Of a stretch of DNA of 64,000 nucleotides, positions 8,901 to 14,900 are shown one piece after another. The notes beneath the pieces were generated by a model that did no database searches, had not been told where the DNA came from, and saw only the letters and a program-made list of their open reading frames with translations. The stretch comes from Macrostomum lignano. Taxonomy: Eukaryota. The stretch covers positions 62,001 to 126,000 of the forward strand of contig NIVC01001100.1 of NCBI GenBank assembly GCA_002269645.1, written 5' to 3'. Position 1 is the first letter of the stretch. Each line of letters opens with the position of its first letter. Made by a program: the position numbers and the translations under genes.

Positions 8901-11900
8901 CTAAGCCTGAGGTGTTCGAACTGATCAGACTGGTGTTCGGGGTGGACGAGAGAACCCACAGGTTGGTTACTGAGTTCCCAGGGCAGTTACTGATCAATCC
9001 GCCCCTCTCGTCATTCTATCCGTTTCATCAATCTGCCCTTCCATCATTCCATCAGTTTCATAAATCCGCCCCTTCCCTCATTCTATCCGTTTCATCAACC
9101 CGCCCCTTCCATCATTCCATCCACTCCATCAATCCGCCCTTCCATCATTCCATCCGCTCCATCAATCCGCCCCTTCCATCATTCCATCCGCTTCATCAAT
9201 CCGCCCCTTCTATCGTTCCATCAGTTTCATCAATCCGCCCTTCCATCATTCCATCCGCTCCATCAATCCGCCCCTTCCGTCATTCCATCCGCTTCATCAA
9301 TCCGCCCCTTCCATCATTCCATCCGCTTCATCAATCCGCCCCTTCCGTCATTCCATCCGCTTCATCAATCCGCCCCTTCCATCATTCCATCCGCTTCATC
9401 AATCCGCCCCTTCCGTCATTCCATCCGCTTCATCAATCCGCCCCTTCCATCATTCCATCCGCTTCATCAATCCGCCCCTTCCATCATTCCATCCGCTTCA
9501 TCAATCCGCCCCTTCCGTCATTCCATCCGTTTCATCAATCCGCCCCTTCCATCATTCCATCCGCTTCATCAATCCGCCCCTTCCATCATTCCATCCGCTT
9601 CATCAATCCGCCCCTTCCATCATTCCATCCGCTTCATCAATCCGCCCCTTCCATCATTCCATCCGCTTCATCAATCCGCCCCTTCCATCATTCCATCCGC
9701 TTCATCAATCCGCCCCTTCCATCATTCCATCCGTTCATCAATCCGCCCCTTCCGTCATTCCATCCGCTTCATCAATCCGCCCCTTCCATCATTCCATCCG
9801 CTTCATCAATCCGCCCCTTCCATCATTCCATCCGCTTCATCAATCCGCCCCTTCCATCATTCCATCCGCTTCATCAATCCGCCCCTTCCATCATTCCATC
9901 CGCTTCATCAATCCGCCCCTTCCCTCATTCCATCCGCTTCATCAATCCGCCCCTTCCATCATTCCATCCGCTTCATCAATCCGCCCCTTCCCTCATTCCA
10001 TCCGCTTCATCAATCCGCCCTTCCCTCATTCCATCAGTTTCATCAATCCGCCCTTCCATCCATCCTCAGCGCATCCCCTCTTCCCATCTCGCACTTCCTC
10101 GTCGCATTTTCAGACCTCTCATTGGTTTTGCAGTCGAATTCGACGCCCATAGCAACCCGTCGACTTCCCCTCTCCCATTTCAAGAGACCAGCTTCGCTCA
10201 GTCCAACAGTCGATTCTCGAGGGCAGCAGCAACTGGAGCGCAAAGATCGCCATCACAGTGATCTCGGCGCAGGGTCTGATCGGCAAGGACAAGACGGGAA
10301 CGTCCGACCCATACGTCACTGTTCAAGTCGGCAGACTTAAAAAGCGAACTAAAACGGTGCCTCAAGAGTTGAACCCCAACTGGAATGAGAAGTTCTACTT
10401 GTGAGTAGACTGTATCAGATTAATTTCAAGAAAATTAAATTGGTTCGAACCTCAGTTACATACCTAATTAAGAATTTCAAAAACTTTCCTCGTTTCAGTG
10501 AGTGCCACAATTTTTCCGATCGAATCAAAGTTCGAGTTTGGTAAGTGTCCTGACTGTGCTGAATGAAGCGGATAATGAAAGCACTTTGCTCTGATAAATA
10601 CGTTTTTAAAGATAATTTGTGCATTTTATAAGTAAATTTGCTTGTTGGAAATTATTGGAAATTATTTTTTTGCATTTGCGCATGCTTTAAATGCGACTGA
10701 ACGAGGTTAAGTTTTCATGAAGCTGCTAGAAAAACTGCTCAAATTACCGTAATTAACTTACCTGGCCATCCGTGCTCTCGCATCGCGCGAATCGCAACTC
10801 CCAGGGATGAGGACAATGATCTCAAGTCGCGAATTCGTCAGAAATTGACGCGCGAATCGGACGACTTCCTCGGTCAAACGTTGATCGAAGTGCGCACCCT
10901 GTCCGGAGAGATGGACGTTTGGTACAACCTTGGTAGGTTGGCGGAGAGACCTTCGAGAGAGCGTGTCAGGCGGGAACCCGGCCAGTTTGATGCTGTCTTC
11001 CACTTCTCCATCCGACTATTTAGAATTTAAATTGCTGCAAAATCAGGCCACTCAAACATGATAAAAATCGATAAAATTCAGCTTCAAGGCCGGTGTTCCC
11101 GCCTTTTTCTTTGAGTCTCCACTTCCATAATAGGAAATCAGAAAACCCAGAAAGAGGTAGAGACTTTAAAGCACCGGATTGCACAGAAAATTGTAGTTTT
11201 AACACCTTTAGCACCTGCAGCACCACCTCTCGTGTGCCTGCACCGACTTTCTAGTACGTCAGTGCACTTAGCAGAAACAAAATCAATTGTTAGAGCCGTA
11301 CAAACCCGGCTAAACCAAGATCTCTCGAACTCTATTTGTCTACTTTGTTGATGCAATTATTCAATGTTTCCGTGTTTCCGAGTCTGCTGTTAGCTTAATC
11401 AAATCTGGTGATAGAAGACCTCGTCGATTGGTCGCTTTGATTGTATTGACGTCTTGCATTGTCGTGCCGATGAAAGGCCTCGCTGTCGCAGTGTGCACTG
11501 CCTGTACAACTAGTCCTTAGGCCTGTCCTAGCTATTTGTAACCTTCCAAGACTTATTCGGAACGAAATGATGAGCTGTTTCTGTACTTTAGTATCATTGT
11601 GATCTTTACGTGGGTAAAACATGTACGTTAGGCACCTATTTTCATTTGTCGTCGATGGATTTTCGGATTTACCTGTAACTTTAAATGTTGTCGTTTTTGG
11701 AAGACGAAATGGCAAATTTTCAAAAAAAATCTGAGTAAACTACTGTTAGTATCTTTTAACAGTTAAATCGTTACTTTTTCACGATAAACATTAATTGAGA
11801 TAATCGTGCTGAAAATCAAAAAAGGGACGAGGACAATGACCTGAGATCGCGGATCCGGTCAAAGTTGACCACCGAATCGGACGATTTTCTCGGTCAGTTG

Positions 11901-14900
11901 CTGCTGGAGGTCAGCAAGCTGTCCGGCGAAATGGACGTCTGGTACACTCTGGGTAGGTGCGGCTGCGGCCGTCTCAGAGACGGGGAACCGAGGCTCCGGG
12001 TCCTGGCAGAGTGGCAGAGTGGCATGATTTATTATTAGACAATGCCGATGGATAAGCCGCGCATTTATTCGCCGCTTGTGTTTCATGCTTGTCCGACGAA
12101 TACACGCATTATTATGTAAACTTTCCTCTGGGATTCGAACCCGATTCGGTCAGCCTTGACTCAACACGGGGCTGCATGGATATTGAAGTTTTAAAGACTT
12201 TATTTTCAAAATTTAGTTAGGAAGAGCGAATGAGACTTGGGTTTCAATTGAATCCTTTATTCTTTAAAGCAATTGAATTGCTTTCTTTAAGAACAAAATA
12301 CAAGTGAACTCTCTAAAGTAATATCTAGCTCGTATAAGTTGAAGTAAAATTTCATCTACGAGTATATACAATTTTCAATAGGTTATTAATGTTGTTGATT
12401 AACTGTTGTAACTTCTACTTAATTAGTAAACATCACTTGAGTACATACATGTTGTTTTTTTCAACTTAATCGAATTTCTTTTATTCATTTCTCCAAATTG
12501 TATATCATTCAATTTCAAGCGCAATTTTGCACTTTATAACGATTCTATTCAATTTGTTTAAATTCTTATTTACAGAAAAACGAACGGACAAGTCGCTCGT
12601 CTCTGGCGCAATCCGATTGCACATCAGCGTAGAGATCAAGGGCGAGGAGAAGGTGGCGCCCTACCATGTGCAGTACACCTGCCTGCATGAGGTAGGTCCG
12701 CCTATCGACTGCAATGATCTTACCGATCTTAAATAATCCTGTATCCATTTCCACAATTTGAATCTGTAGAACATGTTCCACTACATGTGCGAGACCGCCC
12801 GCAAAGAGGGCAAAGAGGAGGTGCAACTTCCCAAAGCGAAAGGCGAGAATGCGTGGAAAGTTTATTTCGAAGCGCATATGCAAGAAATTATTGAAGAGTT
12901 CGCCATGCGTTATGGCATTGAAAGCATCTATCAGGCTATGACGTGAGGGCCGAGACGGCTTTAAAATCTTGATTTTATTATTTCCAATTTGAAGAACTGC
13001 ATCCATCACCAAATTCTCGTAGGCTGAAGCGCAGACCCAGTCCCAAGCCGGCACCCGCCACCCCATTTCTCGCAGGCTGAAGCCCACACCCAGTCCCAAG
13101 CCGGCACCCGCCACCCCATTTTTCGCAGGCTGAAGCCCACACCCAGTCCCAAGCCGCCACCCGCCACCCCATTTCTCGCAGGCTGAAGCCCACACCCAGT
13201 CCCAAGCCGGCACCCGCCACCCCATTTCTCGCAGGCTGAAGCCCACACCCAGTCCCAAGCCGCCACCGCCACCCCATTTCTCGCAGGCTGAAGCCCACAC
13301 CCAGTCCCAAGCCCATATAGGTAGATTTAAATTATGAGCCACCACAGCGTTAATCTGGATCTATTCGAAACAAAATAAAATTCGCGAAAACCCTACTCTT
13401 TCAACAGTCACTTCTCCTGCTTGACGACAAAATCGATCAGCACTGGCGTGCCCGCAGTGATGTCCACCCTGCTAGCCAATATCAATGCATTCTACGCGCA
13501 CAGCACTGGCACAAATGCCGTTAGCGCCAGCGACCGTTTTGCCGCCTCCAACTTTGGCAAAGAGAAGTTTGTAAAGCTGCTCGATCAGCTGCACAACTCT
13601 CTACGCATCAGTTTGTCGGTTTACCGAAATACTTTCCCAGCTTCTCAAAAGGAGAAGCTGCAAGATCTGAAATCCACTGTGGACCTGCTTACAAGCATTA
13701 CATTCTTTCGCTTGAAAGTTCAGGAGCTTAGCAGTCCTCCACGAGCCAGTACAGTACTGAAAGAGTGCGCATTGAACTGCATGAAGACGACTTACCAATT
13801 TCTTTTCGAGAACTGCAACGAGCTGCATCATCGCGAGTTCCAGGATGGTGGCGGCGGAGGTGGCGGAGGCGGAGGCACCACCGGGGGTCATGTTGGACCG
13901 TCGCTGGACTCGCTGGACTTCTGGCACAGGCTGGTCGAGCTTATCATCTCGGTCATAGAGGAGGATCGCAACAGCTACGGCGCGGTGCTGAACCAGTTCC
14001 CCCAGGAGGTGAATATCGGCCAGCTGTCCGCTGCCGCCATGTGGACGCACTTCAGTCAGGACGTACAATTTGCATTAGCTGAGCACGACGAGAAGCGCCT
14101 CTGCAAGAGCTCGGACTACATGAACCTGCTGTTCAAAGTGAAATGGCTCTATAACAAGTACATAGCGGATGTGCCGCCTCACAAGGGCACCATACCGGAG
14201 TACCCGCGCTGGTTCCAGCCATTCGTAATGCAGTGGCTCAGTGAGAACGATGAAGTTTCCATGGAATATCTGCACAGCGCCTATGCCAGGTGAGATATGG
14301 TAGAATAGAGCTTAAAAATAGTGCAATAATTAACAGGCTGCATTCCTGTTTTTTGAGCTGATCCCAAATGCAGTCAAAGTTGAGCTTTTAACTTCATGAT
14401 CATCAGCACCTAATTATTCATATCAATTTTCTTCACTCCACTCTACAGAGACCGCAAGGACAACTTCCAGAAGTCGTCAGACCACGCCCTGTTCAGCACC
14501 TCTGTTGTTGACGTGTTCACGCAGCTCAACCAGTGTTTCGACGTCATCAAAAAGCTGGAGTGCCCGGACCCGGAAATACAGAACAGCTTTCTGAACCGGT
14601 TTGCTGCGACGATTCACAAGGTGCTGCTAGCCTATGCGGATATTGTCAAGAAGGACTACTTGAATTTCGTTTCCAAGCACGAGAAAGCCTGCGTGCTCAT
14701 GAACAACATCCAGCAGCTGAGGGTGCAGCTAGAAAAAGTATTCGAGGCCATGGGAGGCAAGGCGCTGGATCAGGAGACGCAAGACACGCTGCAAGCTCTG
14801 CAGGACAGCCTCAATAGCGTTCTCGACGATTTGGCTGCGATGTTCGCCTCGTCCCAGGAGACTGCCATCGTTATCTCGATCAAGGAGGTTGGCCAACTGC

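Follow-up and report, generated by a model that had tools for sequence, protein, structure and literature searches.

Two alternative exons for the second half of the C2B domain in Macrostomum lignano unc-13, probably used one at a time

In a 64-kb stretch of the genome of the flatworm Macrostomum lignano (contig NIVC01001100.1, positions 62,001 to 126,000; here called the window), the gene unc-13 contains two neighbouring 128-nt exons, A and B, each of which encodes the second half of the C2B domain. Our preferred reading, to which we give a probability of about three in four, is that A and B form a functional, mutually exclusive pair of alternative exons, one used at a time. Two mRNAs would then encode proteins identical save for 42 residues, which comprise the Ca2+-binding loop 3 of C2B, including the helix that inserts into the membrane, and the strands next in sequence. 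The loop-3 helix of Munc13 C2B is one site of Ca2+ and phosphoinositide action on vesicle priming and short-term plasticity and, to our knowledge, has so far been probed only by designed mutations in mouse and nematode. A two-state segment kept across phyla would point to residues that evolution tunes, namely Q768, R772 and K763 in rat numbering (exon residue p is rat residue 756+p; anchors K706, D705 and D711), and would lead one to expect, in flatworms and annelids, classes of neurons that differ in their release properties.

Exon coordinates are given in window numbering on the plus strand, and L and P labels denote comparison loci and proteins. In a protein search, a long query built from the window exons matched unc-13 proteins of M. 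lignano, namely P0121 and the others of its cluster, at 97% identity, followed by two further M. lignano unc-13 paralogues at 72–73% and by mollusc, arthropod and vertebrate unc-13 at 63–71%. On translation the exons cover the C1, C2B, MUN and C-terminal C2 segments of UNC-13, and the matching M. lignano proteins P0121 and P0242 carry the Pfam domains C1_1, C2 and MUN. By homology, the gene in the window is thus unc-13 of M. lignano. The part of it that matters here is laid out as follows.

8588..8961, plus strand: exon encoding the C1 (phorbol-ester/diacylglycerol) domain, from translation and matches to P0121 and P0242.
10185..10400, plus strand: first C2B exon, with Ca2+-binding loop 1 (DKTGTSD) and the polybasic strand, from tblastn and translation; it aligns to rat Munc13-1 C2B.
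10499..10540, plus strand: 42-nt exon of 14 residues with TG at its 3' end, from sequence reading and spliced translations.
10805..10932, plus strand: exon A, 128 nt, the canonical-type second half of C2B, with Q at residue 12 and R at residue 16.
10933..11824, plus strand: A–B intron, 892 nt, between exon A and exon B.
11825..11952, plus strand: exon B, 128 nt, the alternative second half of C2B, with R7, S12, T16, L25, L27, S30, K31 and T41 and all aspartate ligands kept.
12576..12691, plus strand: downstream constitutive exon (EKRTDKS...), which starts with AA, the two bases that share a codon with the last G of A or B.

The TG that closes the 42-nt exon supplies the first two bases of a tryptophan codon, and the first G of either A or B completes it. 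Exon A covers the aspartates and the helix of loop 3 and the strands beyond that helix, and its peptide matches that of the single exon found in molluscs, arthropods and vertebrates exactly or almost exactly. The first C2B exon is present in one copy only within the window, and a tblastx self-comparison returned A and B as the sole duplicated coding segment of the gene.

A preliminary description of this DNA had proposed the exon pair, and every detail was reproduced: both exons are 128 nt long, with an AG acceptor, a GTAGGT donor and equal phase. In their equal length, shared phase, similar sequence and canonical splice sites, 892 nt apart, they have the anatomy of a mutually exclusive cluster. 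The exons match at 94 of 128 nucleotides and at 81% of amino acids, and peptide A finds exon B by tblastn with E = 1.8e-19, a likeness that, to judge from these alignments, is far beyond chance. Our recount of codons agrees with the earlier one (16 of 42 identical, 18 synonymous and 8 non-synonymous), and the substitutions from A to B are K7R, Q12S, R16T, T25L, I27L, R30S, T31K and N41T. Synonymous sites between A and B are saturated in M. lignano, and likewise within each pair found elsewhere. A caveat raised at the outset was that the acceptor of B is weak and purine-rich; the acceptor is indeed of this kind, but the caveat loses weight because exon A of a second M. lignano unc-13 paralogue (paralogue 2, below) has a similar A-rich acceptor.

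The reading frame provides a second line of evidence. Each exon is of length 3n+2, so that the frame is kept only with exactly one of A and B. Spliced translations bore out the earlier claim that including both or neither shifts the frame, and both arrangements give an immediate stop: the product with A and B reads ...WYNLGTRTMT* and ends six codons into B, and skipping both gives ...KVRV*, with a TGA formed at the junction itself. Hence only mRNAs with one of the two exons are predicted to encode UNC-13, and the frame-breaking arrangement typical of a mutually exclusive cluster is present in the sequence. The A+B and skipped products would end after half a C2B domain, and such mRNAs would be expected targets of nonsense-mediated decay, which is the most frequent arrangement among such exon pairs (PMC5740500).

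The same stop could serve a different purpose. If B were a regulatory ‘poison’ exon, its inclusion with A would add a stop and lower unc-13 output through decay, and no alternative protein segment would be made. The position of the A+B stop, six codons into B, suits such a role, as does the presence of a frame-breaking form with both exons skipped in the RNA-guided annotation. However, a stop or frameshift would suffice for it and 42 conserved codons would be unneeded, whereas B is under strong protein-level constraint, keeps all Ca2+ ligands, gives a full C2 score in place of A and is, as a type, the sole coding exon in cestodes. We regard a poison exon as improbable.

Two known mechanisms of exclusivity were considered for the pair and rejected. 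Steric hindrance is unlikely because the A–B introns measure 478–1570 nt across loci, and incompatibility between U2 and U12 sites does not apply to sites that are all GT-AG. Both exons have non-consensus donors (GTAGGT in Macrostomum, GTCAGT on the downstream copy elsewhere), which would fit regulated exons. In L002, L006, L010 and L011, the loci outside Macrostomum, the downstream copy, with S at residue 12 (S12), always has GTCAGT and the upstream copy GTGGGT or GTGCGA, with the exception of the upstream copy of L011 (L011_a), which has GTCAGT; in Macrostomum all four exons have GTAGGT.

Further support for a functional pair comes from its conservation. The order A then B recurs in L005, L004, L002, L006, L010 and L011. 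A second M. lignano contig (L005) is 97.4% identical to the window including introns; its B is unchanged, and its A shows four synonymous differences. An A (407–532) and a B (1723–1848) of its own are also present in the diverged paralogue 2 (L004), and only exons align between that locus and the window (79% for A with A, 83% for B with B and 87% for the downstream exon), the introns being unalignable. For paralogue 3, both copies were seen at the protein level only (P0124 and P0249). Beyond Macrostomum, the trematode Echinostoma caproni (L002) has A at 15850–15975 and B at 17548–17673 between the same flanking exons, the annelid Owenia fusiformis (L006) has copies at 18251–18376 and 19216–19341, and two marine-animal sequences, contig L010 (with an unc-13 closest to the molluscan one) and TARA scaffold L011, have two copies each. 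All twelve exon copies compared at the nucleotide level are 128 nt long, have AG and GT sites and share the same phase. Hence, as judged by these loci, the pair is not a local curiosity and is present at least in flatworms and an annelid.

Several lineages have one form only. Schistosoma mattheei has only A, and Lottia gigantea (L007) has a single copy of the loop-3 exon; in arthropods the exon is fused to its neighbours, and in vertebrates it is single, followed by a short intron without a second copy in read-through fragments. In Echinococcus a B-type exon stands alone and no trace of the other copy is left, and proteins of the tapeworms Dibothriocephalus and Mesocestoides carry the B type. 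Because tapeworms use the B type as their only exon, it must encode a working C2B. Many S12-type exon fragments were met in the searches, but S12 alone is not evidence of a pair, because the S12-type exons in the long contigs L008 and L009 are the single exon of their genes. In L012 there is a flatworm-like B-type exon with upstream sequence too short to judge an A copy.

The claim that the pair is an old duplication under purifying selection stands: A/B synonymous sites are saturated, the B exons of the window and of paralogue 2 (Mlig1_B and Mlig2_B) differ with dN 0.083 and dS 0.97, a dN/dS of about 0.085, and their flanking introns are unalignable. Echinostoma and Echinococcus B differ with dN 0.058 and saturated dS. 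By these substitution patterns, both copies are maintained by selection. They also bear on the reading that B is an unused relic, a pseudo-exon of an old tandem duplication with only A spliced in. That no B-containing transcript was found, that the RNA-guided model PAA82660.1 uses A, that the acceptor of B is purine-rich and that Schistosoma lacks B are what a relic would lead one to expect. Yet at every locus examined B is intact in length, phase, open frame and both splice sites. It is constrained between M. lignano paralogues with introns that can no longer be aligned and between a trematode and cestodes, and is, as a type, the only exon in cestodes; exon A of paralogue 2, moreover, has the same A-rich acceptor. 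A relic is, in our view, highly improbable.

The preliminary description had also named a way in which it could fail, namely that B belongs to a collapsed paralogue. An assembly in which B came from another unc-13 paralogue or haplotype is conceivable, given the hidden polyploidy and highly redundant assembly of M. lignano (PMC5730564) and its three or more unc-13 paralogues. However, each paralogue has its own A and B, the window B differs from the B of paralogues 2 and 3, and the same arrangement stands in the second GenBank contig, L005. A collapsed paralogue is ruled out because the A-then-B order recurs in independent loci, assemblies and phyla, including other species assembled independently, and the chance that B is an artefact of any such kind is negligible.

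Several observations weigh against a mutually exclusive pair. No mRNA, expressed sequence tag or spliced protein fragment joining B to its neighbours was found in M. lignano or in any two-exon species, in word-indexed protein searches (with B in context, the long query and Echinostoma B in context) and a profile search with B-type exons, in which apparently only targets no longer than about 1.75 query lengths were listed. In GenBank, M. lignano is annotated from an RNA-seq-guided transcript assembly with open reading frames (ORFs) called by TransDecoder (PMC5730564), and the RNA-guided models met either use A or skip both exons. Exon A is used in the GenBank model PAA82660.1 (P0242; A only) and in UniProt A0A1I8G3Z4 (P0121). 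PAA72286.1 (P0241) is the ORF, out of frame, of a transcript model in which 10540 is spliced directly to 12576; because this model skips both exons, exon A is not strictly constitutive. The UniProt models that contain B, P0122, P0123 and P0124 (A0A1I8HM34, A0A1I8IAL3 and A0A1I8HVR6), hold A as well, in tandem and joined by read-through or by a ‘GR’ bridge; because these junctions are frame-fixing, we take the models as prediction artefacts and not as evidence of B use. In practical terms, the current M. lignano protein models are wrong here, since the UniProt models contain A and B in tandem and GenBank PAA72286.1 starts out of frame. Candidate docking and selector RNA pairings in the introns were limited to short AT-rich matches, none common to the paralogues; the intron alignment between M. 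lignano paralogues contained no conserved element; and Rfam and ORF scans of the region, which include the A–B intron, returned nothing on either strand and no RNA family. Schistosoma has lost B with no obvious replacement, so that the second form is dispensable in some lineages. Finally, a functional difference between A and B would be read from the position of their substitutions only.

What separates the two forms is a small number of residues beside the helix. Residue 12 (rat Q768, next to R769) is Q in the upstream copy (H in L011_a) and S in the downstream copy in all eight pairs or copies compared. Flatworm B copies carry R in place of K at residue 7, the equivalent of rat K763, and at residue 16 (rat R772) they have T, S or A in place of R; in Macrostomum, B copies have four more changes just after the conserved FLGQ motif (residues 25–31) and one at residue 41. 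The DEDxD and SDD aspartates are kept in A and B in all species compared, the loop-1 motif DKTGTSD lies in the shared upstream exon, and a basic residue (K or R) at position 13, the equivalent of rat R769, is kept in both forms. This agrees with the earlier description, in which both copies retain the Ca2+-ligand aspartates and B loses one basic residue of the helix; the lost residue is the equivalent of rat R772, and it is lost in all flatworm B copies.

Both forms appear to be complete C2 domains, with Pfam C2 scores of 89.5 bits for the A isoform and 88.9 bits for the B isoform, and all 153 residues of the M. lignano C2B align to rat Munc13-1 structures (E = 1e-77). In an AlphaFold model of a natural B-type C2B, that of Echinococcus, there is a helix at residues 78–84, which are exon residues 6–12; the model is of moderate confidence (mean pLDDT 70), lowest around the helix and the following loop (67 and 52 in the blocks of residues 71–90). 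By alignment and model, the domain is a C2B of Munc13 type with a long loop 3 that carries a predicted helix, and the conserved loop-1 and loop-3 aspartates mark it as a C2 domain predicted to bind Ca2+. The loop-3 helix, which is unique to Munc13, enters the membrane and places its basic residues on lipid head groups; priming is strongly impaired by R769E, and release probability changes when the C2B Ca2+-binding loops are mutated (PMC8648301). If A and B are alternatives, the splice choice would set the strength, or the Ca2+ or phosphoinositide dependence, of C1–C2B binding to the plasma membrane, and thereby release probability and short-term plasticity, probably differing by neuron or by stage.

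From its distribution, the pair predates the split between Macrostomum and the parasitic flatworms, and it probably predates that between flatworms and annelids. A further step, which we hold only tentatively, is that the a/b pair (Q versus S at rat Q768) is a single ancient invention of spiralians or older, and that for over half a billion years it has been retained to switch the membrane sensor of Munc13 C2B between two settings according to cell type. If true, lineages with only a (schistosomes, molluscs such as Lottia, arthropods and vertebrates) would be natural knock-outs of one setting, those with only b (tapeworms, perhaps priapulids) natural knock-outs of the other, and one or two residues beside R769 a naturally validated handle on release probability.

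Against a single origin, the flatworm and annelid-like pairs may be independent duplications of the same exon with a convergent S12. There are only 42 residues to compare, position 12 alone separates a from b everywhere, and S12 also stands in single-exon lineages (Priapulus, L008 and L009). A and B also share lineage-specific residues, such as RI at positions 9–10 in Macrostomum and F14 in L010, which suggests a recent origin or gene conversion, and independent duplications have affected further exons of this part of the gene (that for loop 1 in Owenia and that for the linker in Lottia). However, the order (Q-type upstream, S-type downstream), boundaries and phase are the same in all pairs, the GTCAGT donor is common to downstream copies outside Macrostomum, and synonymous sites are saturated within each pair. 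We consider independent origins less likely than not.

Sharing of residues between A and B within a species extends further, with RI at 9–10 in Macrostomum, F14 in both L010 and L011 and L14 in Owenia, a hint of gene conversion or of co-evolution with a common partner surface. In Owenia (L006) the preceding C2B exon, with loop 1 and the polybasic strand, also occurs as two tandem copies with the same donor (14119–14262 and 15854–16003), so that there may be two alternative-exon clusters in one C2B domain. In Lottia gigantea (L007) the exon at the end of the C1–C2B linker stands twice in tandem (4925–4954 and 5561–5596) beside the single loop-3 exon, which suggests recurrent tandem exon duplication in this region of unc-13.

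The rest of the window is rich in repeats. A 34-nt unit repeated 31.6 times (94% matches) at 8993–10060 occupies the greater part of the intron that separates the C1 exon from the first C2B exon; its plus strand is rich in C (GC skew −0.52), and all three of its frames are open, so that naive ORF finders read through it. Downstream of unc-13 there are more than 10 long minisatellite arrays at 20800–39100 and 45049–45903, for example 29 nt × 60 (24103–25864), (TAAC) × 214 (27075–27929) and 23 nt × 65 (30037–31524), a load consistent with the repeat-rich M. lignano genome (PMC5730564). At about 46600–59100 lies a Ty3/gypsy-type long terminal repeat (LTR) retroelement in a head-to-tail array with a period of 4822 bp, which has a zinc-knuckle gag, an aspartyl protease, a reverse transcriptase (RT), an RNase H and an integrase C-terminus; in its first unit an internal deletion joins gag to RT.

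Our examination of the full-text literature on unc-13 and Munc13 with mutually exclusive splicing gave no description of such a C2B pair, which, with coverage incomplete, is an absence of evidence. The domain itself is best compared with rat Munc13-1 C2B (PDB 6NYC/6NYT, 5UE8 and 7T7C): the loop-1 residues D705 and D711 align, rat, A and B have the same conserved loop-3 aspartates, both forms carry a basic residue at the R769 equivalent and a helix is predicted where loop 3 starts. It differs in that vertebrates have one exon here, that the B type has S for Q768 and that flatworm B types have T, S or A for R772 and R for K763. As a gene structure, the pair resembles the human clusters of Hatje et al. 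2017 (PMC5740500), in which neighbouring exons have the same length, the same phase and similar sequence and joint inclusion leads to a premature stop; lengths not divisible by three are found in 60% of them. That atlas is human and validated by junction reads, with splice-junction reads required from each exon bridging the other, whereas unc-13 exon B is described here from sequence alone. The closest precedents of the unc-13 pair are the mutually exclusive C2-domain exons of Syt1 and Esyt2. Mutually exclusive exons that alter C2 domains are known from invertebrate Syt1, Syt34 and Esyt2 (Craxton 2010, PMC2823689); according to that paper, they originated repeatedly among invertebrates and are missing from the vertebrate orthologues. 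Here the gene is instead unc-13, which is not in that collection, the domain is a Munc13-type C2B with a loop-3 helix, and B is seen here in genomic DNA; in both cases, including the Syt1 (snt-1) variants of C. elegans, tandem homologous exons would swap a portion of a C2 domain, the protein being a presynaptic or a membrane-contact one.

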